DNA of 64,000 nucleotides from Syncephalis fuscata S228 (lineage: Eukaryota > Fungi > Zoopagomycota), in the NCBI GenBank assembly GCA_025786725.1, contig JAHLTZ010000026.1, positions 124,001-188,000 of the forward strand, given 5' to 3'. The position numbers were made by a program, and so were the translations under genes. Shown piece by piece: positions 1-60,217 of the stretch. Below the pieces are notes generated by a model, which searched no databases, was not told the DNA's origin, and saw only the letters and a program-made list of their open reading frames with translations. Numbering within the stretch: position 1 is the stretch's first letter; every line of letters starts with the position of its first letter.

Positions 1-8121
<8,121 letters not shown>

Positions 8122-8245
8122 GCCGCGACAGAGATTGCCAGTATTTAAAAGTGATTGCAAGATGAGAAACAACGATACAGAACAATGCAAGATGGAAATA
8201 ACGGTGACACGAAACTAAACAACTTAGGCTGTGCGCGTGCAACTG

Positions 8246-19700: not shown

Positions 19701-22496
19701 CATACTATAGAATTATTATTATGAGTGCCACTGTTGATACAGACAAGTTCCGTCGATATTTTGATGATTGTCCGGTAATTCAAGTGCCAGGTAGAACATT
19801 CCCAGTTACGGTGAATTATTTAGAAGATATTATTGAAGCAACTGGTATTTATAGTATTATATTAAATAGTATTGGTTATAACAATATTACTAGGTTATAC
19901 AATTGAGGTTGATTCACGATATGCCAAACCACGAGAGCGAAAGCGTAATAATCTGCCAGGTAACATACTATAATTTACTAGTAATTATTAAACTTAATAA
20001 TAATAATAATAATGACGACGATGATGAAATAGAATCAGTAAATATACGTGGTAAAGGTGGAAAAGTCTATCAAATGGCTATAGATATAGATATGGAAGAA
20101 GATTGGAGCATGACAAGTTATCCAGCATATCCATTAGAGCAATTAAGTGGTCATTATTCGGATATTACACGTCGTACATTAGGCTGTATGGATGAAGAAC
20201 GTATCAACTATGATTTGATTATTCGATTACTGGAGTATTTATGTTTCGAACAAGATACAAGTAACAATGATAATGCGACAAGTGAAGAGGCTATAACATC
20301 AGAGAATATAGAGAATATAGAGACTATAGATGCCAATACATTAAAATCAATTACAAAAGCTTCAGTTGAATTATCCTCAGTAGATGAGGCTATTTTAATA
20401 TTCTTACCTGGATTACCAGAAATTAGAATACTGCACGAGAGAATACTTGATAATGAACAATTACGTGATTCAAGTCACTTTTTAATTATACCAGTTCACT
20501 CACTATTAGCCGGTGAACATCAGGAGCGAGCATTTCAACGACCGCCTAAAGGAATGCGTAAGATTATTCTATCTACCAATTTGGCTGAAACAGGTCAGTA
20601 GCAGCTAGTTAAACAAGTGTATACTCATCAATGCTATAATACTATTAATAGGCATTACTATACCTGATGTCACTATTGTTATTGATACGGGTAAAGTTAA
20701 AGAAATGCGGTAAGAAATGGAATGTGTTTTAGTAGGACTTTTAATAACAGTTTTAGATATGACGAGAAACGACGAGTATCCGCATTGGAGGAAGGATTTG
20801 TAGCTCGTGCCAATGCCCGTCAGCGACGAGGTCGAGCTGGTCGAGTACAGCCTGGTGTTTGTTACCATTTGTTTACACAACATCGACATAACAATATGGT
20901 AAACTATCCTTAATTGATATTAAACAGAGCAATGCTAATGTTTACTTAGATGTTTTCATATCAAACACCGGAAATGTTACGTCTTCCGTTACAAGAGCTT
21001 TGCTTGCGTATTAAGGCCTATGGATACGGCTCTGTAGAACCGTTTTTACTTAATGCATTGGATAAGCCTCGTCCAGAAGCAATTAATACAGCTATGCAGC
21101 AGCTTGTTGAAGTAAATAGAGCATTATGCTCGTAATTCTATACTGACATATTATTATTGTTATTATTATTACTAGGTTGGTGCTATAGCCAGTGAGGAAA
21201 CAGCTGAGATGCATCAGCCATTAACACCGCTCGGTGAACATTTGGCACGTCTACCACTTGATGTTCACTTGGCCAAGATGTTGGTTTATGCACTATTTTC
21301 CGGTGTCTTGATCCAATTCTAACGATTGTGGCGGCCATCAGTAATAAAGCATTTTTATACGGCCATATCAGCAATCGGCAGCGGCTGATCAGGCAAAACA
21401 AGCATTTGCTACAGGTAAACATGATAAACGGTTGTTACATTCGTTAATCTAGAACTAAACATATAATACATGTTAGATAATTCGGATATGTTGACCATTT
21501 ACAAGGCCTACTGTCAATGGTAATGATATAATAGTTTATTAACAATTATACCTATTGCTTCTTCATTGTTGTTAATTATAAACTATAGGCGTGAAGTTTG
21601 CCGAACACGTCGTATGTCCCCCAATGATTTTTGCAAACAGAATTATCTTGATGCACAGGTTTTACAAGTTATTGAAGACACAAAACGACAAATACTTGGA
21701 TTACTTGTCTCAACTCGACTCGTGACTGTAGATGCAGCAACACAATCGTCGCTTAGTCGGTAAGTTTGATTAATGATAATAATAATAGCATAGTATGACA
21801 AACATTTGACGATTTAATTAATATATATTATTATTATTATAGTGGTGGATATCAAACACAAATGGCACTATGTCCTGTACCAGTGGAAGCAAATCAAAAT
21901 GCGCAGCATATTAACGTTTTACGCGCTATCATTGTAGCCGGTCTTTATCCACGTGTGGCTCGACGTGATCACGAGTTGCATCGTTGGTTGATCCGTGGCG
22001 GTGCAACGGTTGTAGTGCATCCGTCTTCAATAAACCAAGAGAAAGGCTTGGACAGATCCACAGGTAGCTGGCTTGCATATAATGTTGCGCAACAATCCGG
22101 TTCGAATGCCTATGTATGGGATACTACTGTGGTGAACGCGGTGGCTGTCGTGTTATTTGGTCGGGAAATGGAGGTTGAGGTGAGTATCAAAACTATACTA
22201 CGTATCTAGTATGTATTAATAACACGCCCTATTATTAGCATTTAATACGACGTGTTACGCTTGAGGATTGGATTAAATTTAAATGTGTAGGTGTGACAGC
22301 AGCTGTATTACGCCGACTGCGCCGTGAATTGGTAAGTAGGCGATAGGATCGTGTAAATATACAATTGTCATCTGATCCAATACTTTTTCTTCAATAGAAT
22401 GCCGTACTACGTCATGCTATTTACCGACCGGGTGAATTACTGCCAGAACGACTTACTCGCTGGCTAGATCTGGCTATTGAAGTAGTTTGTGCATAA
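16718..22496 (+). CDS. DEAH-box RNA helicase, DHX29/DHX57-like
   Basis: Spliced motifs [90 protein letters not shown] and an HA2/OB region. N-terminal UBA-like segment and a WTGKLPK..L.DYC motif as in DHX29. Confidence 0.9.
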
Positions 22497-23688
22497 TACC
22501 TAAACTGCATTGCTTTTTTTGCAAATAAATAGCTATGAGCTAGTTATACTTTTTATTTTTAGTAAAATGGCTATTCATATTCTAGCTAATTAGAGCTTGT
22601 GGTCATTGCAATGCTAATTTGTACATATTATTATCAAACTAATCAATATATTTTGGTGACCTAAAAAATTGTAATCAAATTATGCACAATAATAGATATT
22701 TAAAAAACTACAAGCATAATATATCAGCTTGCTATTGCGTCGGCGTTAAGCGTCTTTTTGGAATGCATGCAGATATTGATGGTTGAATTTGTCGGTGAAA
22801 GCAAAAAAAACAAGTGATGCATTGTTGCTACTTCTGTAAAGCCGATACATTCACTTGCAACACATGATCAGATTATCTGGTAACACAATAAAAACTAGTG
22901 TGTAGATTCTTACGTAATACACTGGACCATTGTAACTGTTACTCGTTTGTGTAAATGCCAAGCCGATTGAGTCAAAAGCTTGGCTTAATTTTAGTGTGTT
23001 ATTGACGTGTTGATATTCGCGTGACCCAAATTGTCTCGTGGATGCGTTTGCAGATGATCTTTGCATGCATAAAGCACACACTGCAGTTACTTATGCACAG
23101 ATGTTAATCACCTGTCAAAACGCTTTGTTATTTTCACGCTGTTTTGACGATATGTTCTATGTAATACAGCGTGATCGGCCTCTCATGCCATAAATCTAAA
23201 TAGTCTACCAGTATACACAAATAACTAGTAATGATGTCATCACGCTATCTTTCACTGAATCAGTGATGCTATCACACAAACAACAGCATGTATAAACTGC
23301 ACATGACCATGTCACTTATTCACCAAGCAATGGCCACTATGCTACTACAACATTTTACTAGCTATGCTTTGTTGTTGCTGTTCACATAATTATCATATGA
23401 ACATCATGTGTATGTATGTGACGCTTTAGCTTATATTGCTTCCTTTCCTTCCTTTTAATTTTAGTATATATTGAACGATATACGCAACCAACTAATAAAA
23501 AATCTTTATTTACTTCACAACTCGCTTTCGTCTAACTAACGCTCTAACAGTTATTGTGTTTTCTCAAGCGTATTCAAGCTCTGCTTTATTTCAAATTTAC
23601 CAAACAAATTCTAACGCCATTGCTCAATTTTTAGCAACCACACTCCATCGTTCACTCTACTTGTTTATTTTAACAAATCAATATCATT

Positions 23689-26600
23689 ATGAAGCTTTAT
23701 ATTGTCGTTGTCTGCACTCTTCTTGTGGCTTTTTTAGTCAGTACAGCCATGGTGGATGCTAGGCCAAACAGAATTCGTCGTGGTATGTTATAGTAATATA
23801 AATGTGCAAATTAACATACTGACGTAATATTTAATTACTTGCAATATTAGCCGGTAAGTCGTGATTAGGGATCATTGTTCCAGTGCTTACTGTATGTTAT
23901 ACAAATAATTGGTATGATAAATAGTTGGTAAGTGTTGATTGCACATAGCTATTGGTATAGTAATTAATCGTTGTCTTTAATTTAAATGGGTAAATAGCGC
24001 CATTGGCTAAAAGTAGGTTTAATATAAAACAAAAATATTATATAAATGATATCGATATTCTGTATTTATATTAATAGGAGGTAAATAGCAATAAGAATAG
24101 TTAATTTCTTATTTAATCAATACTATTTGCATTATTAAACTAGCGCTATCAAAAAGTAAGTGGTAATCTTTATAGACCAACTATGCGCTAAACATATGTC
24201 ATTAATCGTGTATGTTTAACAACTTGTATTAATAGGATGTAAGTGATATTCTATATCAACTAAATATAGACTAAACACATATTATGTACTGTGTGCGCCT
24301 GATAATTTGCATTAATAGCTTGTAAGTAGTATTGCTCATTAGCAACTATGCGCTAAACGTATGCAATATATCTTATATTTAATAACATGATATTATAGCT
24401 GGTAAGTGGTATTGTATGCTTACTAAATATGCACTAAATATATACCATGTACATTGTGTGTTTAATAACTTGACACTGTAGCTAGTAAGTGGTATTGTAT
24501 ATCGCCCAACTATATACTAAACGTATCTCACAATTTTTTGAATACTTGATAATTTATATTAATAGCCAGTAAGTAGTATTGTATATCAATTAGCAATATA
24601 CTAAACATATGCACTGTTTGTGTTTGATAACTTGATATTAATAGCTCGTAAGTGACATAGCATTCTAAGTAGATATAGATTAAACATATATGATGCATTG
24701 CGTGTAATTTATAATTTGAAATTAATAGAATGTAAGTTGTATTTTATATCAGCTAATTATACGCTAAACACTTGCAATGCACCATATGGCTTTAATAACT
24801 TATAACGACAGCTGGTAAGTGATATTATATATTGATTAGCTACGCACTAAATATATACCGTACTTTGTGCGGGATCAATAACTTGAAATTAATAGAAAGT
24901 AGGTGGTGCTATATGTTAATTAGCTATATACTAAACATGTGTCGTGTATCGTGCGTTTTCAATAACTTGTATTAATAGCTGGTAAGTAGTATTGTATATT
25001 AGCTACATATATATTAATAATGCATCATCCACTGTTTGTATTTAATAACTTGGATTAATAGATAGTAAGTGGCATTATATATGACTAATGATATGCTAAA
25101 CATATATTGTGTACTTTGTGTGCTTGATAATTTTATATTAATAGCTCGTAAGTAGCATGGTATATTAATTAGCCATAGTTTAAATATACATTATGTATTG
25201 CGTATGCCTAATAATTTGAAATCAATAGAATGTAAGTGGCATTGTATATTAATCGGCTGTGCGTTAAACGTATGCAATATATCTTGTGTTTAATAAATTG
25301 GCATTATAGCTAGTAAGTGGTATTATATATTGCTCAGCTATATACTAAGCATATGTCACATATTTTTTATGTTTGATAACCTGCATTGATAGAAAGTAAG
25401 TGACATTATATACAAATTAACTATATACTAAGCATATATCATGCACTTTGTGTGCTCAATAACTTGTATTAATAGCTGGTAAGTAATATTGCATAACAGT
25501 TAACTATATACTAAGCGTATGTTATTCACCTTGTGCGTTAATAACTTGTATTAATAGACTGTAAGTGAGATTATACATTAGCTAATTGGGCACTAAATAT
25601 GCTTTATACATTTCTTGTATTTAATAACTTTCCATTATAGCCGGTAATTAATATGTTATATTAATTACATATATATTAATAACATGCGCATGCATCTTGC
25701 GTTTCCAATAACATGTATTAATAGGAGGTGAGTGATATTTTATATCAGTCAACGATACACTAAATACATGTCATGTACTCTGCGTTTAATGATTTTTGCT
25801 AATAGAACGTAAGTGATGTTGTATATCAATCAACCATGCACTAAACATATGTCGTGCACTCTATGTGCCTAATGCTCACACAAATAGATGGTAAGTGGCA
25901 TTGTATATTAAGCAATATTTTACTAAATATATACGATGTACCACGATACCTAACAATTTCTAATAATAGTTTGTAAGCGGATTTTTTATATTAATTAATT
26001 ATACATTAAACGCGTGTGGTATACTTTCATATTTAATAACTTGACATTATAGCTGGTAAGTTGTATTTTACATTAATCAATTATGCGCTAAACATATACC
26101 ACACAAATTATGCTCGATAACTTGTATTAATAGATAGTAAGTGGTATTTTATAATAATTAACTATATACTAAACATATAATATGTGCTGTGGGTGCTCGG
26201 TAACTTGTATTAATAGCTAGTAAGCAACATTGTATATTCATCAATTATATACTAAACATATGTCATGTATTATGCTTAATAACTTTTATTACTAGATTGT
26301 AAGTTGTATTGTATGTTAATTAATTATGCACTAAACAAATGCTATACACTGTGTGGTCAATGCATTGATATTAATAGCTGGTATGTAGTAATCCACGCTG
26401 ATTAACTATATACTAAGCATATAGCATTCACCTTGTGTGTTTAATACCTTGATGTTACTAGAGTGTAAGTTGTATTGCATGTTAGCTAACTATATACTAA
26501 ATATATATCATACACTTTGTGTATTTGGTAACTTGTATTGACAGGGTGTAAGTAATGTTGAATATTAGTTAATTAGGCATTAAACGCACTTTATACATTT

Positions 26601-28181
26601 CTTGCTTTAATAATTTAAATCATAGCTAGTAAGTGATATTTTATGTCAACCAACTATCTACTAAGCATGTATTATGCATTATTGCATTTAATAATCTGGC
26701 ATTAATAGCTCGTAAGTGATATTATATGTTAGTTTAGTGCGCACTAAATATATGTCATTTACTTTGTGTTTAATAATCCGGAACTAATAGAAGGTAAGTA
26801 ATATTATATATAAATTAAATATACGCTAAACATATACCATGCATTATATTTTAATAATTTATATTAATAGCTCGTAAGTAGCATTGTATATTAATTGAGT
26901 ATGCGTTAAATATATACCGTGCACTTTGTATGCTTAACAACAATATGAATAGTTCGTAAGTGGCGTGGCATATTAACTATATGTATACTAATAATATACC
27001 ATATACCATGCATTATGTTTAATAACTTGTATTAATAGATTGTAAGTGGTGTTGTATACTAGATAGCTATGTATTAAACATAAGCAATACATCTGTGTAT
27101 TTAATGATTTGACATTGTAGCTCGTAAGTGGTATTTTATACCAATTGAATATGCGCTAACTATGCTTCATACATGGCATTTAATGATTTGTGTTAATAGA
27201 GAGTAAGTATCATTATATACCGATTAACTATGCGCTAAATATATGCAATATGTCTTTGTCTAATGGCTTGTGTTAATAGGAGGTAAGTAGTATTATATAG
27301 TAATTATTTATGTACTAAACATATACCATGCACCGTATGTTTAATGATTTGAAATTAATAGGAAGTAAGTGGTGCTATATGTTAATTACCTATATACTAA
27401 ACATATATTATGTACTGTATGTGCTTAATAACTTGCCATTATAGCTCGTAAGTGGCATTATATACTAATCAAATATGCGCTAAGCATATACTATGAATTT
27501 TGAATGCTCAATAATATATCTTAATAGGAAGTAAGTGGCATTGCATATTAATTGGCTATACATTAAACATAAACCATCATTATGCGTATTTAATAACTTG
27601 TATTAATAGAATGTAAGTGATATGCTATATTAAGTAGCTGCTCGTTAAACATATGGAATGTACTACACGCATTTAATAATTCATATTAATAGATAGTAAG
27701 TGATATTACACATTAATCAAACTACAAGCTAAATACATAGCATGCGTTGTGTGTATTTAATAATTTGTACAGTAGACAGTATGTGGTACCTTATATTAAC
27801 CAGTCATGCATTAAACATATGATATACACTGCTTGTTTAATAATTTTTAATAATAGGACGTAAGTGATAATGCATATTAATTAACAATGCGCTAATCATA
27901 TATCATGTACTGTGCGTGTTTGATGACTGTATTAATAGATGGTAAGTAACATTGTATACTAACTGATCATGCACTAAATATATACCATGCACTTTGTGTG
28001 TTTGATGGCTTACATTAACAGTCAGTAAGTGCTACTTTATACTAATTGACTATGCGCTAAATATATACCGTGCACTTTCTGTATTTAATAACTTGCAATA
28101 TAGATAGTAAGTAGGGTTATATAATACTAACTCATATGTTAATCCCATGGCATTATATATATATTCATAAATATAGACTAA
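23689..28181 (+). CDS. Micro-exon gene: 55 exons / 54 introns encoding a 92-aa secreted prepro-peptide; 51 internal exons are 3 nt
   Basis: Exon 1 is 23689-23782 (signal peptide MKLYIVVVCTLLVAFLVSTAMVDA, then RPNRIRR+g). Internal exons include 15 nt at 23998-24012 and 12 nt at 24144-24155. The 3-nt exons start at 23851, 23925, 24078, 24236, 24319, 24399, 24482, 24566, 24645, 24729, 24812, 24896, 24979, 25062, 25145, 25229, 25310, 25393, 25476, 25558, 25641, 25725, 25806, 25888, 25970, 26053, 26134, 26217, 26296, 26378, 26462, 26545, 26626, 26709, 26791, 26871, 26953, 27039, 27121, 27200, 27280, 27362, 27445, 27528, 27610, 27693, 27776, 27857, 27939, 28022 and 28104. The last exon starts at 28177 (ac+TAA). 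Every exon is flanked by YAG and a GT donor (mostly GTAAGT). The joined CDS is 279 nt with no internal stop. Confidence 0.82.
24156..28106 (+). repeat. Tandem array of 48 diverged ~82-bp units (homologous intron plus 3-nt exon)
   Basis: Approximate consensus gtaagtggtattgtatattaattaactatatactaaacatatgccatgcactttgtgtgtttaataacttgtattaatag+NNN. Mean period (28104-24236)/47 = ~82 bp. Confidence 0.95.
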
Positions 28182-28408
28182 CCAATGCATTCAAGACATT
28201 GGCATTGGTAGTATAACTGGACTGCAAGTTACATATGTTTTAGGTGTATATTCGGCAAGAATCAAGATCATTTGATAGTTCCGTTCAATCTATTTATATA
28301 TCAAGTTCCATCCAGTGCTCCGACTTACTAATCTTTAATCAATGACACCATTATATTGCTAATAAGTTTGTATTTACTTGTACTTATCCGACTATACAAA
28401 CTTTTAGT

Positions 28409-37131: not shown

Positions 37132-38635
37132 AGTGGAAAAGGTTTAAACATTTGCTGTCGAAATATAAGAAATAAACGAGTTTGAATTGGCGTGGATAAA
37201 AATAATAATGAATTATTTTAAAGTTATTAAGCCATTGGTTTATCTTTTAATTATAATAATAATGTTAACTAAATAGCTATAAAATAATATTAGCGGAAAA
37301 ACCAACACTTTTTAAAATATAGATAATAATATGTGTATTATATTGAGTGTGTGCTACACAAGTGTTCTAATATATATACTGAGTAATTTCTAGATGTTTT
37401 ATAATTTTGACTTTTAGATTCAACTTATGACAATAATATTATTATTACGTAATTGTCTAAAGTTATTATAGCAACTTATGACGTGTTGATTATTTAATTG
37501 GCACTGTTTAATGTTTATCGTTATTGTTACAAAGAAATAGACGCTACTTTTATTAACCCATTGTTTATAAGTTTAATTTGAATTGTATCATCTAAATTGC
37601 TTTAATAATTTAATAAGAAATGTTACTATAATATCGGTTTTTAATTAAATATTACATTTATTAATTTAAATTTAAAGATTTAATAGTAATAATAATAATA
37701 GTATTAGTGTTTGATGGTTGCAATGGTAATGGTGATTTGCATAGTCATCATTATATGGCTTTTACAGGTGATGGTTCATATTAGTATTTACCTGATAAAA
37801 TAAATACATTTATTGAATTATTGTTATTGATTTGGCTTGATGATTAATTTTTACCGATCTGTTGGATGCGTAATGGAAATGCTTGTCAAGTAGAAATCAA
37901 AGTTTGAAATGATTATAATAAATAGATAGCTAGAAAGGCTGTATAGTACACGCCTAAACCACTAAGGCCAATTGGATTATTTTTTTAGTTTTAGCAGATA
38001 AGCAACTAAACCATTTAAATGCCATTTTTATTAGCATTACTAATGGTTTACATACTTTCTATATCAATACAACAATTATTAAGCCAAACACTTAAGTTAC
38101 AAAGCTCAGAATATTAGAATACGTTGCTTAAAACTTAATATAAGCGCATGCTTTATGAGCTATGTAATGCCTTTTTTATTTGATAAAAGCTCTGCTTAAG
38201 ATATATATGTGGGCCATACACAGGTTTATTACGGTGGATAGCACAGATAATATAGGTTTAGCCATGATTATATAATGTTTGATGCGAACGGGCAAAACAC
38301 CTCTGAGTAATTCTACTGTTATTTAAAGACAGGCCTTTCTTTTATAGATATAAAGGCCTTTCAGAATGAGCCATGAAATTACTCGCTGTAAAACCATCTA
38401 TGAAAAGGCCTGCTTGCAAGTAGCCGAATTGTTGTTCATAAGTCAGAAATAATATCGATGCCATTGATTCTATATAAACCATACGGTTTTGCTTAAACTA
38501 TGTACAATACAAACCATCCACTATCACGCGCGCCATATAATAACAATTTACTTTATTCTTACTATCTTGTCTAACAATTCACGATATTTCTATTTACAGC
38601 TATTAACTAACGATTTCAGTCGATTTACTCATCCA

Positions 38636-41258
38636 ATGAAACCTATCCTTTTAGCCGCTTTATTGCTGGCATTTGCCGCCAGTGACGTGTTGGCTCAAGC
38701 AAAAACACGCGTTCCAAGCCAACCTCCCACTGCTGCCACACCAACCACTAAAGTCAGCACACTCGATAATGCTTTTTTAATTCAGCTGGATGACGCCACT
38801 CAGCAGGCTGCATTCCGTGATAGCTTGACAAAGCTTAGCATTAATTTCCGTGTGCGCTATGCACTTACCGCTACCATGAACGCCATCAGTATCGACACTG
38901 ATAGCAAAAATCTTAAAGTTATCGAGGATGTGCCTGGTGTAAAGCGTATTTGGCCAATTAATCAAGTAGCTGGTCCTGTTGTTCAACGACAGCAGCTAAA
39001 GGAAGACAATCCATTGCCATACTCGCATGGTATGACGGGCGTGGATGTGATGCATACGAAATACAAGGTCTACGGAAAAGGGTTAAGGTCGGTGTCATCG
39101 ACAGCGGCATCGATTACATGCATCCAGCCTTAGGAGGCTGCTTTGGTCCAAGCTGTCGTGTCGCCTATGGGCGGGACTTTGTTGGCAACAATTTCAATGG
39201 CACAACAAGTACCATTAGCCAAAGCGATGACCCTCGCGACACATGCAATGGACATGGTACGCATGTGGCCGGCATTATTGGTGCACACGACGAAGCATTT
39301 CTTGGTGTTGCTCCAGAAGTTACATTTGGTGCCTATAAAATATTTGGCTGCGGCAGATACACATCAACCGATGCCATTAAGGCCGGACTGGATCGTGCCT
39401 ATGCCGACGGTATGGACATTGTGAATCTGTCGCTTGGTGAAACTGGTGGCTGGGCTCAGTCTGATGATGCTATTCTGGCCGAAATACTTGCTCGAAAAGG
39501 CTTGATTGTTGTGGCATCAGCCGGCAACTCGGGAGATGGCGGTCTCTGGGAGGTCGGTAGTCCTTCTGTCGCCCCTAGCGTTTTCTCAGTCGCATCACTT
39601 GATAACTTCAAGTATCCACACCTGGGCTATCTCTTAGTTTGGCAATCGATACCGTGTTTGGTTACTCGGTATCCAATAAGCTTAATCCTTTGAACACGAA
39701 CGCCACAGAGATTGTTGTGGCTGGTCCTGCCGACAACGTATTGGGATGCAGGCCGTTTGGTCCCGAGGTAAATGGCAAAGTTGTATTAATCCAGCGAGGC
39801 AACTGCACTTTCGACATCAAAGCCATGAATGCCGAAAAGGCTGGTGCTGCTGTTGCTATTCTCTACAACAATGAGCCAGGCCCGTTGAGTCCTTCAATCT
39901 CACCAGATATTAAAATTTCAGTATTAAGTATTGAAAAATCCAGCGGTGAAGCAATTATTAAGAGTCTGGCGAGCAATCCAAATCAGAAGATTTTATTTGA
40001 TAAAAATATTATAGTAGAAGTGCCTACGGCAGGCCACTTGTCCGCTTTTTCATCATGGGGGCCCGGCTCCAAGGCCGAGATCAAGCCAGATATTGGTGGT
40101 CCCGGTGGCTTTATCTACTCAACCATTCCGTTGCCAATGGGTAAATACGGCGTCAAGAGTGGTACATCAATGTCTTCTCCATATGTTGCCGGATCCATAG
40201 CACTTTATCTACAAGTTAATGGTATCGATAATAAATTGGGCACTGGTGCTGAGAAGATTGATCGTACTCGTCTACACCAGCTGTTCCAAAACACTGCTCG
40301 TCCCGCCACTGAAGTCAAAAACAACACTCTTATCAGTTCAGTTGCACTTCAAGGCGCCGGTATGCTCAATGTCGAACGTGCCATTTTTGGCACCACGCTT
40401 GTTACGCCATCACGGCTTGCTCTTAACGACACGCAATATCCTGGTAATCACAATGGTGATGCACGCAATCGAACTGTGCGTATTACCAATCTGTCAAAGT
40501 CTGATCGTGTCTACACCGTTACTCACGTTCCAGCTGTAGCTGCACGTGGTTTTGACGCTGATGGCTCAGTAATGTTCCAGCCCGAGACGCGTGACGCACC
40601 AGCCAGTGTTAGCTTTTCATCCAGTCATGTAAAAATTGCCGCTGGTCAAATCAGCAGTATTGATGTGTTAATCACGCCACCTAGTGCGCTGCCTGAAACT
40701 GAGAAATGGGTATATTCGGGTTATATTGTATTTGATCCAGCCGCAAACTCAAACAACACGCCATCAAGCGATGCCATATATGTACCATACCTTGGTATTA
40801 AGGGACGTTTAAGCGATATACATGTTCTAAAGCAGAATCCTACCATCGAAATGGCCGATCAACTAACAAAGCAGCTTATTCCACCATCAAACACGACAAC
40901 GCCCTATGTATTGACTGGCCATGAAGTCATGACTGTGTCGTATGATGTCGAATATCCTAGTTTACACGCAAAAACGCGCATATATGATGCCGCTACCAAA
41001 AAAGTAGTTGGTGCCATTCCTGGATCTTCCCAAGACAGGCTTATCCGAAGACAGCCCAAGTCTCCTCCTAGTAATACATTCAAATGGGCTGGCGGTGTGA
41101 CGATAAACGATAAAGCCACCTTTAAAGGTAGCAATCTTACAAACGGAATTTACTACTTTGAATTAATGGCACTTCGTCCCTATGGAGATGCCGCAGTGGA
41201 TAGTGATTATGATATTTGGCGCTCACCTAACGTCACGATTAATATTACTAAAGCTTAA
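38636..41258 (+). CDS. Secreted subtilisin-like serine protease (S8) with PA domain and Fn3-like C-terminal domain; two apparent frameshifts (~39080, ~39620)
   Basis: Signal peptide MKPILLAALLLAFAASDVLA; catalytic motifs VIDSGIDY, CNGHGTHVAG and KSGTSMSSPYVAG; PA motif LIQRGNCTFDIKAMNA; QGAGMLNV; YSGYI. Confidence 0.9.
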
Positions 41259-47372: not shown

Positions 47373-48446
47373 ATGTTCAACATGGTTTTTTCATCTCATA
47401 TCTTTCGCACTGGCATATTAACAAGCACTCTAGCTGGTATAATTGCTTCCGGTTTTTTGGTCTCAGCCTCGTCGTATGAAAAGGCGTCAGCCGTCATTAA
47501 CGGCCCCAAGGTCAATGGCATCTTTACTTTTGATCAAACTGCCACTGGTGTAACCATCAACGGAGCTATTGAAAGTGGTCTCTGTACTCCTGGCAATTAC
47601 TCCTACCATATTCACGAAAACTATATTCCTGAAGGCGGAAACTGTCAGGACGCAGGAAAACATTTTGATCCAGTGTTAGACAATGACTCTTCAACTGGAG
47701 AAAAGAAATGCGAATTGGGCGATTTAAGCGGAAAATTTGGTACAATTTCGGTGCAAGACACTCTAAACAAACCTATTCCGCCGTTTCGACATATTGATCC
47801 CAGCCTTACCTTGGTCGGTAAAAACAATATCGTGGGCCGATCTATTGTTATTCATAACCCGGACGGTAGTCGATTGGCTTGCGCTAATATTCGTTTAACC
47901 AATCACTCTACCAACGTTTCGACATCTAATAAAACACATGACACGTCAAACGCTGGTACTCCTCAAGCTCCGCCTAATCAACCAAATCAGCCAAATATTA
48001 ATAAGCCAAGCAGCGGTATTCCAGTCGTGCGACCACCTAATTATGGGGATACAACCACAGCAACCACAGATGGTGGTCAGGAAAGAATCGCTAAAATAGC
48101 TGGTGGAAAGTGTATCAAATCAAATGGATTTATGCATAACGATACGCTAAATAACGTAGCTCATGGTGGTTATGCAGAGGAAATCGTCCCATGCGACGAT
48201 ACACCAGCTATTCAGCCACCAGTTGATAGCTCCATAGCCACTTCATCACAAGCCAGCCCACCAGCCACTCAAATGTCCAATGGCTACTATGCTCATCCAA
48301 ACAGTCAAAAATCATCTTGCCCATCTAATAAGTCTATCAGAAGACGGTCCAATAGACGTTCTTCAGAACCAGTCACTACTAACATTGTAAAACGTTTCAG
48401 AGTACCAAATGCCTACGAATCACACTATATAAAAAATAATTCATAA
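47373..48446 (+). CDS. Secreted Cu/Zn-SOD-fold protein (Cu-only SOD5-like) with a low-complexity C-terminal tail
   Basis: N-terminal hydrophobic signal; YHIHE, GKHFDP, CELGDLSGKFG, IVGRSIVIHNPDGSRLACANI. Confidence 0.85.
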   Translation: MFNMVFSSHIFRTGILTSTLAGIIASGFLVSASSYEKASAVINGPKVNGIFTFDQTATGVTINGAIESGLCTPGNYSYHIHENYIPEGGNCQDAGKHFDPVLDNDSSTGEKKCELGDLSGKFGTISVQDTLNKPIPPFRHIDPSLTLVGKNNIVGRSIVIHNPDGSRLACANIRLTNHSTNVSTSNKTHDTSNAGTPQAPPNQPNQPNINKPSSGIPVVRPPNYGDTTTATTDGGQERIAKIAGGKCIKSNGFMHNDTLNNVAHGGYAEEIVPCDDTPAIQPPVDSSIATSSQASPPATQMSNGYYAHPNSQKSSCPSNKSIRRRSNRRSSEPVTTNIVKRFRVPNAYESHYIKNNS

Positions 48447-57921: not shown

Positions 57922-60217
57922 TTAGATACGCCCAATAATGAGTGCATCTACGAAATCGCCCTTGCTAAGAGATCGTGCTTGTTCGCTTGCTAACGGTAGC
58001 TGCAGTAAAGCATTTGCTCCACGTACGCTTGCCATACGACTGCTGCGCTGATCGCCGGTACTTGTGGCAACAAAGCCGGTGCCATCTTCAGTCACTCGTA
58101 CAAGTGCACGATGATATTCAGGTCTTGAATCGAGTTGCACGTCATGTGTCAGTTTTACACGCATCATCGTGTGACCTGGATTGTTAAGCCCGCCCATGCG
58201 ACGAAGTGCTGGTACTGCAAATAGATGGAATGTAACCAGCGCTGATCCTGGATTGCCTGGCAGTGCAAAGACCAGTTTAGTAGCGTCGGAAGGTGTACGT
58301 CCAGGCACGGTAGCAAAAGTTGTGGGCTTGCCTGGCTTCATCAATACGCGGCCAAAGTGGATGGTTGCACGTAAACGGGTCTCCAAGATTGACTTAAGAA
58401 TATCGGCCTCGCCCATAGATACACCACCCGTAGTAATGAGTACATCGACACGCTCCAAGGCACTACGTAATCCAGCCTCAATATGGTCAGGATGATCGGG
58501 AATAACGCCAAGGTCGACGCTTTCAAATCCAGCGGCACGGACAGCAGCCAGAAGCGATGGTCTATTTGCATCACGGATTTGTCCCATATGAAGTGGGCCA
58601 CCTGCACCAACGTCTACAACCTCATTACCAGTTGACATAACACCAACGACTGGGCGACGATAAACAGCCAGTTGACCAACACCGCTAGCTGCCAGTAAAC
58701 TAACTTCACCGCCAACTTCAGTAATGGTATCGCCGGTATGTAAAATAATTTCGTTACTCTGGACATCAGAACCAATTTCACGAACATTTTCACCTGGCTG
58801 GACAGTGCGTGACAATTCAACGAGTTCTTCTCCTTGATTATCACTTGATGCTTTAATAAGCTTTGAGTGTTCTATTGGAACGACTGCATTAGCTCCTTCA
58901 GGTAAAGGTCCGCCCGTAGCAATACGGGCAATATATCCACTAGGTAATGATAATGGCTCTGTTCCTGCTAGTGCTACGTACTCGAAGACTGGGAAAGTAC
59001 CAGCTCCATCAGTTGCTAAATAAATAGCATAATATATTAGTAAAAAGTATATTCATGTATATGTTTTTAATTAACCTACCATTAATCGCGTAACCATCCA
59101 TGGTCGATGCGCGATAGGCAGGTACTGCTTCGCGTGCATGGATGTCTTCAGCGACTACTGCGCCAGCAATGTTGGTACTTAGTGCAACATTAATAGGAGG
59201 CAGGCGTTTAGCATACTCATGAACAAGTGCTAATGCATCGCCTACTGGTGTTAATGGATAGGGTGAAACACGTAGACGATTGACTATATATATATATATA
59301 TATGGAATAAATTAATTACACTGCTGTGTATATTATCGTATCGTTTACATACCTGGCGAAGTAAGTGTGCGTGCATTTTGATTCAATTGTGGAATTGGAC
59401 TGACTGAGCGTGGAAGTGTGCCTGCGACATTGGCTTGCGACGTACGAGGTAGCGCGCCAATGACTGTATGCGAAGGAATACGAAGTGAGCCATAGGCAGC
59501 TGCCGAAGTAGGCGAAAGCGCAGCTGGCGATGAACCTGGACCGGCTGGCATAGCAGGATTATGCATCGAATCGTGCGCTGCCCGTGAACTTGTCGTACCG
59601 CGTGCCAGTTCAAGTGCATGCGGTAAAATAGGAAGCAAAGCAGATAGATTTTCTAGCGCACCTTTTGGCGAACCTGGTAGTGTGATAATAACAGTATTGC
59701 CACGAATGCCACAAATGGGGCGTGAAAGTGCGGCAAATGGTGTTACTTGCAAGCCTGACGTCAGCATGGACATCATTAGACCCGAGGCAACTTTTGTTAA
59801 AAGTGGTTGAATAGCCTAACGTAATTATTGCTATTAGTATTAATATTACCATGCCATTTTATCGTATTATGTGTATTTCTCACCTCAGGTGTTACGTCAC
59901 GCTGGCCAAAGCCAGTACCACCATTGGTAAGTACTAAATCCAACTTTCTATGGCCTGTCCATAGTTTAATAGTGCCTTGAATTTGATCGGCATCGTCGGG
60001 AACACACGAGCGAGCTGTAATAAGCCAGTTGTTGACCTCGTCGTTATTTTCGGTCAGCAATGCTGCAACAGCCGGCCCGGTCTCATCGACAGCTTGCTGT
60101 GCAAAAACACTATCGCTCACTATAGTTATTCAGACATTATTAGCTACTATGCCCACCCGTTCATGTTAGGTGCAACTTACCCGTCAATAGACCGACGTGA
60201 TATCTTGCTTGAGGCAT
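57922..60217 (-). CDS. cnxE: Gephyrin/CnxE molybdenum-cofactor biosynthesis protein (MogA G-domain plus MoeA E-domain)
   Basis: GLLTVSD...DETGP...LTNGGTGFGQRDVTPE...TLPGSPKGALE (MogA); VPAYRASTMDGYA, RIATGGPLPEGANAV, GENVREIGSD, STGNEV, ITTGGVSMGEAD, MKPGKP, LPGNP, STGDQRSSR (MoeA). Confidence 0.95.

Follow-up and report, generated by a model that had tools for sequence, protein, structure and literature searches.

Tandem arrays of three-nucleotide exons and homologous introns as the probable body of a secreted-peptide gene in the fungus Syncephalis fuscata

Introners are near-identical spliceosomal introns dispersed in unrelated genes of a genome, and intron gain by tandem duplication in its classical form gives one intron at an AGGT site. 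In the recursive splicing of Drosophila and vertebrates, ratchet points of the form AG/GTAAGT, which are zero-length exons, are found in very long introns. Conotoxins and Kex2-processed fungal peptides combine a conserved signal/pro region with a hypervariable mature part, which changes by point substitution in ordinary exons. The gene considered here has features of each of these systems and lies in a stretch of 64,000 nucleotides (nt) from Syncephalis fuscata S228 (assembly GCA_025786725.1, contig JAHLTZ010000026.1, positions 124,001 to 188,000 of the forward strand), a zoopagalean obligate parasite of other fungi. The whole of this stretch is called the window, and its positions are counted from its first letter. 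An array of 48 homologous introns, separated by exons of exactly 3 nt, occupies positions 24156-28106 of its + strand, and very probably forms the body of a real, expressed S. fuscata gene for a secreted prepropeptide, grown by duplication and deletion of exon-intron units.

The resemblance to these systems is partial in every case. As in recursive splicing, the acceptor is followed by a regenerated strong donor, here in the form TAG-NNN-GTAAGT with 3 nt left per step, but recursive splicing leaves nothing or a discarded exon, whereas here a coding triplet would be left each time, in an order of removal that we infer. As with introners and gain by tandem duplication, there are many homologous introns in one genome that were made by copying existing sequence. 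Unlike introners, they are not dispersed but occur only in the tandem arrays of a single gene family, and unlike classical tandem-duplication gain they amount to thousands of exon-intron units. The signal peptide and the RR/KR motifs are kept and the mature parts are unrelated between members, as in prepropeptides of the conotoxin type; here, in contrast to those families, length and sequence also change by codon-sized cassettes.

Two kinds of animal genes are also similar in design. The micro-exon genes (MEGs) of Schistosoma have exons of 3-81 bp and introns of up to 5 kb, and variation by alternative splicing has been reported for them (PMC10526429). The S. fuscata genes share with them secreted products, a run of tiny exons, each divisible by 3 in length, between a conventional signal-peptide exon and a last exon, and membership of a large, fast-diverging family in a parasite; they differ in that nearly all internal exons are exactly 3 nt, the introns are ~80 nt long and mutually homologous, and the organism is a fungus. 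A profile of the exon-1 peptide, run over 1.84 billion representatives, gave only S. fuscata proteins and one environmental contig, and Pfam gave no MEG-related match for family members; the resemblance is one of analogy, not membership. The bicycle genes of gall-forming aphids encode putative secreted effectors in many small internal exons, nearly all of which start at codon position 2; the length of the protein follows the number of exons, and gene structure is preserved better than sequence (PMC9168663). Phase-1 introns, with exons starting at codon position 2, length that tracks exon number and structure that outlasts sequence are found here as well, but bicycle genes have ~17 exons of tens of bases in an animal genome, and serial 3-nt exons with homologous short introns are unreported there.

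Most of the coding sequence of the window gene lies in very short internal exons with lengths that are multiples of 3, between a conventional signal-peptide first exon and a conserved conventional last exon. It is an extreme form of the micro-exon-gene kind, in which serial 3-nt exons with homologous short introns are new. Single 3-nt exons are known as rarities, and we know of no report of runs of at least 50 in more than 100 genes with thousands of copies. Fungal examples of isolated 3-nt exons are on record (PMC5639578). The full-text literature searched yielded neither a description of arrays of such exons nor one of this Syncephalis family, and the mentions of S. fuscata found there come from phylogenomic or virus surveys only.

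The predicted gene consists of the following parts, with the evidence for each given in brackets; X2 is a public run whose kind was guessed to be RNA.

23689..23782, + strand: coding part of exon 1, 94 nt from the ATG (reading of the sequence, conservation in paralogues, X2 depth)
23783..24155, + strand: pro-region, five diverged introns of 63-71 nt and five small exons (colinear with the intronless paralogue L061)
23851-23853, 23925-23927 and 24078-24080, + strand: the 3-nt exons of the pro-region, CCG, TTG and GAG respectively
23998-24012 and 24144-24155, + strand: the 15-nt and the 12-nt exon of the pro-region
24156..28106, + strand: micro-exon array, 48 homologous introns with 3-nt exons (alignment, site scan, intron hidden Markov model)
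28107..28176, + strand: last intron, 70 nt (counterpart intron and acceptor kept in complete paralogues)
28177..28400, + strand: terminal exon (conserved motif, X2 depth; 28400 is not a mapped transcript end)

Exon 1 ends one base into a codon (phase 1) at a GTATGT donor. Its product, MKL..VDA-RPNRIRR, consists of a hydrophobic signal peptide, judged by eye, and a short pro-piece ending in RIRR. The joined exons of the pro-region read AVAPLAKR-ALSKR, with two dibasic sites, and its 15-nt exon is also present in paralogues on contigs C24, C57 and C72. The last intron stands outside the 80-nt family and has a TACTAAC-like branch motif and an ATAG end. The first two bases of the terminal exon finish the last codon (Asn) and are followed by TAA at 28179-28181 and then by the 3' untranslated region (UTR); the motif NN-TAA-CC(A/G)A..TTCAAG..CATTGG around the stop is kept in both micro-exon and intronless paralogues. 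Of the 53 internal exons, 51 have 3 nt, and the remaining two have 15 and 12 nt. The joined translation, computed from this predicted exon model, is a product of 92 residues that is Ser/Thr-rich after its last KR and contains both TQSETD and TQSKTD, the peptides that had been read from the array in an initial annotation made from the sequence alone. The RR, KR and KR motifs of this product are conserved in the family, and its secretion, dibasic (Kex2-type) processing and biological activity are predicted from sequence. In the proposed design, the conventional exon 1 would give the signal peptide and the dibasic-ended pro-piece, the 3-nt exons would spell the whole mature peptide, each of them completing one codon with two bases and starting the following codon with its third, and the conserved last exon would give the stop codon and the 3' UTR.

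The regularity of the array is apparent from its splice sites. A pattern scan of the window finds AG-NNN-GT(A/G)(A/T)G 48 times at 23849-28102 on the + strand, at a spacing of 79-86 nt, and the variant donors GTAAAT, GTAGGT and GTAATT at 24076, 24894 and 25639 close the gaps in the series. Outside the array the same pattern occurs 10 times in the remaining ~60 kb of the + strand and 7 times on the whole - strand. The array introns are 76-83 nt long and all in phase 1, each followed by a 3-nt exon, the final one being ATA at 28104-28106, and the gap from intron to intron is exactly 3 nt in 47 of 47 cases. Their common form is GTAAGT ... (C/T)TAAA(C/T) ... TTTAATAACTTG ... TTAATAG, and the donor, the mid-intron motif, the TTTAATAACTTG block and the TTAATAG acceptor are their near-invariant parts. 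Among the 53 introns of the gene, 43 have GTAAGT as donor and 50 have TAG as acceptor, and (C/T)TAA is present in the middle of 47 of the 48 array introns. Tandem Repeats Finder (TRF) reports a period of 82-84 nt only in short stretches, with a match of 71-76%.

Alignment of the 48 array introns (80 columns, mean column entropy 0.84 bit) gives a mean pairwise identity of 0.67, or of 0.59 if only the 62 columns that are not fixed are counted; base composition by itself predicts ~0.30. Entropy is 1.71, 1.57 and 1.97 bit at the three exon positions, only 5 of the 80 intron columns reach 1.5, and the per-site identity of the exons in the 48-unit alignment, 0.32, is at the random level. A hidden Markov model (HMM) built from the 48 introns matches only these within the window, with no ordinary intron matched in its other 60 kb, and a further 491 introns in other loci. 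The initial annotation had described 48 homologous units, 51 three-nt exons with 26 distinct triplets, and splice signals that are conserved around a varying triplet; the alignment bears out the array to the base, a recount returns the same numbers, and the column entropies agree with the contrast between signals and triplets. These figures also set the array apart from a plain minisatellite and place the similarity of its introns beyond shared motifs and AT bias. Two finer points fared less well. The two AAT exons do share the acceptor variant ascribed to them, but its GAAATTAATAG ending is found ahead of an AAA and a GAA exon too. The proposed recurrence of a block of six units is marginal: of its 18 triplet positions, 15 agree (P = 0.014, order shuffle), but the corresponding intron diagonal, with a mean identity of 0.72, ranks 4 of 897 and is not an outlier, and a six-unit repeat inside the window array is only suggestive.

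Four independent lines of evidence, namely stop avoidance, codon bias, colinearity and an RNA-like run, indicate that the triplets are probably spliced in and translated; the indirect support is strong, and the direct support consists of one contig. In unique arrays, codons that span the joints in the frame of exon 1 include no stop among 351, against 12.9 expected when triplets are shuffled within arrays (P<2e-4), and the window array alone has none against 3.4 expected (P = 0.01). The third frame of the joined triplets contains 28 stops, as expected, and the conserved TAA in the last exon is in frame with exon 1. In the micro-exon frame, T makes up 61% and C 16% of codon position 3, which corresponds to exon position 2; the same position is 53% T and 26% C in L061, and the introns are 38% T and 35% A. 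L061, the intronless gene of protein P0002, follows the joined exons of the window gene base for base through five predicted junctions (exon 1, CCG, TTG, 15 nt, GAG, 12 nt), and it has the same stop position (TAA), a homologous 3' UTR and a homologous promoter. It is 100% identical to NCBI KAI9599469.1 of S. fuscata and maps uninterrupted in the window's own assembly.

The fourth line is the depth profile of X2. Its summed contig (word) depth is 76912 on exon 1, ~0-150 on the array, and 37427 and 24584 over 28092-28400; depth is very high over 23664-23827, and both gene ends stand ~1000-fold above the array, a profile that cannot come from DNA. The window gene is highly expressed, as judged from this end-exon depth, which is partly owed to paralogues. 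In one X2 contig, the end of exon 1 of the paralogue L026/L030 runs into GTG-AGG, the first two 3-nt exons of that paralogue, where the genome reads GTATGT. A second RNA loose end (TATAGGCCCGCGG...) had no match in the genome when searched with two gapped micro-exon patterns and a contiguous 18-mer; it is consistent with a spliced product or with a strain difference and proves nothing.

The window gene belongs to a large family. The S. fuscata genome that was searched comprises 29.4 Mb in 371 contigs, and the family analyses rest on loci L001-L062, merged into 37 segments. At least 40 copies of exon 1 were scored out of 254 first-look candidates, and in 24 of the 25 copies examined it is 94 nt long, in phase 1 and RR-ended; the signal-peptide region has at least 150 matches in the genome and a five-unit array block at least 186. 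The intron HMM matches 539 times in 36 loci, where neighbouring family introns are separated by exactly 3 nt 451 times out of 488, the rest being boundary slips or one missed intron. A strict pattern of two adjacent units has 2549 matches genome-wide, and hence at least 2549 adjacent micro-exon pairs, against none for the reversed control, and the places listed from this search are tandem runs. The other traced exon sizes are mostly 6, 9, 15 and 27 nt, and rare calls of 1 or 2 nt are possibly tracing errors. In all, more than 100 sister genes appear to share the micro-exon architecture.

The exon-1 peptide profile, made from 19 paralogues, finds 19 proteins, of which 18 are named 'hypothetical protein BDF19DRAFT_...' of S. 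fuscata and one comes from an environmental contig in ENA; a protein homology search with P0002 finds five family members only. The product of the window gene is absent from both searches, neither of which is exhaustive for it. The traced products have a common prepro part and are then wholly different, being Pro/Arg-rich, Cys-rich, Gly-rich or Ser/Thr-rich. Cys-rich mature parts are carried by P0008, P0010, P0013, P0014 and P0016, family members elsewhere in the genome, and P0016 matches the SVWC domain (PF15430, E = 4.7e-7). Since the mature parts, including that of P0016, are unrelated, a signal/pro cassette has been joined to unrelated mature peptides. The products would form a family of more than 100 variable secreted peptides that are plausibly effectors or toxins against the host fungi.

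Several loci of the family show peculiarities of their own. The public model of P0003 (C57:512907-516054, L006) consists of exon 1 and a 19-residue read-through piece ~70 nt downstream that runs into the intron, and the models of P0001 and P0007 (L003, L023) look mis-spliced into the intron by eye only. In L025 (C157:303628-306775) and L024 (C168:182407-185554) the first micro-exon is ATG and is followed by GCAAGC, which has the look of a GC-AG intron within a micro-exon array. L029 (C57:188615-191745) has an exon 1 of 93 nt in phase 0, which ends in FIG instead of RR, and in comparison with its sister L026, to which it is 98% identical, its intron 1 has a duplication of 70 nt; L029 is possibly a copy in decay.

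The sister genes provide insight into how the arrays evolve. Insertions or deletions of 82, 162, 162 and 244 nt, or 1, 2, 2 and 3 units, separate the arrays of paralogue pairs with 96-99% identity. In seven sister arrays the mean intron identity is 0.80-0.90, with pairs of up to 99-100%, compared with a between-array mean of 0.67, and in 43% of cases the nearest relative of a unit is another unit of its own array, where chance would give 6%. In several of these arrays identity is higher at even lags, a period of two that indicates two-unit blocks. The initial annotation had proposed that the gene grew by unequal crossover of single and multi-unit blocks; whole-unit insertions and deletions, local similarity and the period of two uphold this for the sister genes, but the window array has no sign of recent duplication. 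The related proposal that recombination can add or remove single residues has held, as a unit adds exactly 3 nt to the mRNA, its gain or loss therefore stays in frame, and the sister arrays differ by whole units.

According to the proposed mechanism, the array introns would descend from one ancestral intron, and the arrays would grow and shrink by duplication and deletion of an intron together with its 3 nt, one or a few units at a time, via misaligned recombination between introns. The triplets would then diverge under selection on the peptide, while the introns would be held to their consensus, consisting of a strong donor, two branch-like motifs, the length and the TAG. The family is still turning over at other loci, and the window array is one of its old members.

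Several observations weigh against this account. Within the window array, intron identity (0.669) equals that between arrays (0.670) and is flat over lags 1-12, which makes it an old array with no recent duplication. Near-identical introns carry triplets that are only 35-90% alike by position. The +1 frame, in which each 3-nt exon is read as a codon, is also free of stops, with none among 395 against ~6-7 expected; this is likely due to the preference for codons ending in T or C, because of which no triplet is itself a stop, with dual coding as a less likely alternative. No read or contig was seen to span the window gene's own 51 micro-exons, and the direct RNA evidence for junctions consists of two micro-exons of a paralogue from a run that was guessed to be RNA. 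Most X2 contigs on the window are only 90-95% alike to it, so that paralogues contribute to the depth on the two end exons. A separate observation on the +1 frame concerns the public model P0011, whose long product, rich in Leu, Val and Ala, seems to come from reading a P0005-like gene in that frame.

The origin of the introns is the point at which a different explanation has to be considered. Each duplication of a unit makes a new intron, and the thousands of homologous introns are therefore a gain by copying. This agrees with the massive intron gain claimed at first, which has to be qualified by the existence of intronless members, one of them nested in the micro-exon clade and pointing to secondary loss. 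In an unrooted tree of the region from -70 to +94 (165 columns), L061 lies among micro-exon genes with support of 90/92 and 90/78, and at least 435 nt upstream of it are common to micro-exon members as well; this nested position and the kept family promoter are no more than suggestive of secondary intron loss, which may have occurred, for example, via cDNA. If the introns were instead introner-like mobile introns, or products of reverse splicing into family mRNAs, they would have entered pre-existing intronless genes codon by codon, and intronless members with a colinear coding sequence do exist. Such spread would fit homologous introns at thousands of sites in more than 100 genes, and it would fit introns that are at least 95% identical and flank different triplets, but a phase-1 insertion in every successive codon would be needed. 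In the 60 kb of the window that hold other genes the intron HMM has no match, near-identical paralogues differ in length by whole tandem units, the period-2 identity and the low-complexity runs of triplets (CTC-CTC-GTC etc.) are traces of tandem duplication, and the one intronless gene on the tree nests inside micro-exon genes with 90% support, which fits loss. Insertion of mobile introns is thus a very unlikely origin of the arrays.

The relation between introns and triplets leads to a further explanation, that the gene is real but that the similarity within sister arrays is due to concerted evolution, with the introns converted, the triplets selected and the arrays old and stable in length. 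Among unit pairs of the same array whose introns are at least 95% alike, the exon positions 1, 2 and 3 are alike in 65-70%, 70-90% and 35-40%; the least conserved exon site is the first base of a codon and the best conserved is the third. Triplets so decoupled from their introns fit selection for amino-acid change after duplication, or homogenisation of the introns by conversion while selection holds the triplets. In eight clean recent pairs of paralogues, 0 of 255 exon sites differ compared with ~1% of intron sites, and the variability of the triplets is therefore the outcome of selection or of intron homogenisation, not of a mutational hot spot. The core that had been called hypervariable is so in that the exon columns are among the most variable of the unit, but not as a site of elevated mutation. 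Conversion would account for introns that are more alike than their triplets, for the absence of exon differences in recent pairs and for a window array that is uniformly ~67% alike with no effect of distance. It would not account for whole-unit differences between paralogues that are 96-99% identical, which are changes in length, and the low-complexity triplets of young arrays agree at exon positions 1-2 in 65-90%, against 27-49% in bins of lower intron identity, as expected if the exons were copied along with their introns. Length-stable arrays homogenised by conversion are a very unlikely explanation in this pure form, and concerted evolution and unit duplication are not exclusive. A candidate excess of exon substitutions between paralogues (odds ratio 2.8) was dropped, since in the C24 alignment that was inspected, which is not that of the C24/C72 pair, it came from a one-unit register shift.

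That the array is a non-coding minisatellite inside one long intron, the whole 4.4 kb being removed, the triplets never reaching the mRNA and the splice-like motifs passed on with the repeat, is a reading already largely refuted and highly improbable, since, even though the near absence of X2 depth over the array would look the same if every unit were skipped and TRF sees the period only in short stretches of 71-76% match, conservation is highest in the splice-motif columns and lowest in the 3 nt that they enclose, the 3-nt spacing is exact in nearly all cases across 36 loci, joint-spanning stops are avoided and the third-position bias is codon-like, the joined exons are colinear with an intronless paralogue, and an RNA contig bears two micro-exons of another.

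For the preferred reading, in which every triplet is an exon, the splicing signals are of particular importance. The donor of the array introns is a perfect match to U1, and there are two branch-like motifs, CTAAAC at ~45 nt and TAATAAC at ~15 nt from the 3' end of the intron, each of which serves singly in ordinary introns of the neighbouring helicase gene. No conserved RNA structure was found by RNAalifold among 120 family introns (no pairs; mean minimum-free-energy z-score -0.43), and the constraint acts on primary motifs and on length. As an acceptor and the next donor are only 3 nt apart and could hardly be engaged together, the introns are likely to be removed stepwise, one by one and in order, by a process resembling recursive splicing.

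These genes matter in several respects. With 3' and 5' splice sites 3 nt apart, the arrays offer a test of the limits of splice-site recognition and of ordered intron removal in a fungus, and they show the creation of introns on a large scale by copying of exon-intron units. They also represent a gene design in which recombination alters the length of a protein by single residues and the frame is never broken. Standard gene finders are blind to such genes and the public NCBI/JGI models are wrong, as mapped for P0003 and as it appears by eye for P0001 and P0007, and therefore a large and highly expressed part of the secretome is missing or wrong in databases. The peptides themselves are candidate effectors or antifungal toxins of an obligate fungal parasite.

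Similar arrays are found beyond S. fuscata. A scan of metagenome contigs with the two-unit pattern returned 23 contigs. Two soil contigs, Ga0335075_10035010 (L072:6072-7190, + strand) and Ga0335072_10093949 (L068:40-972, - strand), contain similar arrays at a GC content of 45%. They have a signal-peptide exon of 87 nt (MRVPALFLV...) that ends in phase 0, then 14 or more three-nt exons that are whole codons (D L S S Y Q C F I D Y Y D Y), and introns of ~60-70 nt that are mutually similar (GTAAGT..GCTGAC..TAATAG) and are not recognised by the Syncephalis intron HMM. About 10 AT-rich contigs (GC 16-26%) have variable 3-nt exons at a spacing of 80-110 nt with mutually similar introns of ~90 nt, and the frame in which each exon is a codon is open and rich in Ile and Met. 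The arrays are located as follows.

L064:88-1417, L065, L073-L077, L081:714-4713 and L084: AT-rich array contigs (WNFZ01.../WNGA01... and Ga0137367)

The architecture may have arisen more than once, and the secretomes of other early-diverging fungi may likewise be incomplete or wrong in databases, given the similar arrays in soil and AT-rich metagenome contigs. A tentative proposal, which we regard as possible but doubtful, is that the building of peptides from codon cassettes was selected as a generator of diversity in a host-parasite arms race and did not come about by accidental repeat expansion, in S. fuscata and independently in at least one or two other uncultured eukaryotes. If so, the introns would be at once signals for stepwise splicing, homology arms for the gain, loss and shuffling of residues, and possibly a substrate for combinatorial exon skipping.

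The same scan returned six contigs in which all triplets are GGA (L063, L067:6879-9205, L071, L079, L082, L083), and these were rejected as micro-exon arrays. They have 33-51 identical triplets at a spacing of ~72 nt in one common pattern that resembles clustered regularly interspaced short palindromic repeats (CRISPR), and L067, the sole one read, is a CRISPR array with a 37-nt repeat containing TAATAGGGAGTAAGT and variable spacers. A diverged, uninterrupted member of the family, P0019, a Cys-containing protein of 80 residues, is encoded at L086:338-580 (ENA ERZ1505405, 589 bp) and is the only profile match outside the S. fuscata annotation.

A small DNA run with the same organism label (X1), whose contigs are too short for a comparison of unit number, differs from the window at 24750, 24876, 24938, 24942 and 24951; all these positions are in array introns at a contig depth of 4-5, and the differences may represent isolate variation or sequencing error. 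Array-like introns are absent from five neighbouring genes of the window, which are a helicase directly upstream of the array gene (19903-22490, + strand, with a Helicase_C domain and introns of 60-85 nt), a PAK-type kinase (4826-8190, - strand), an S8 subtilase with PA and Fn3-like domains (38489-41258, + strand), an open reading frame similar to Cu/Zn superoxide dismutase (47373-48446, + strand) and a MoeA/gephyrin-like gene (57922-58815, - strand).

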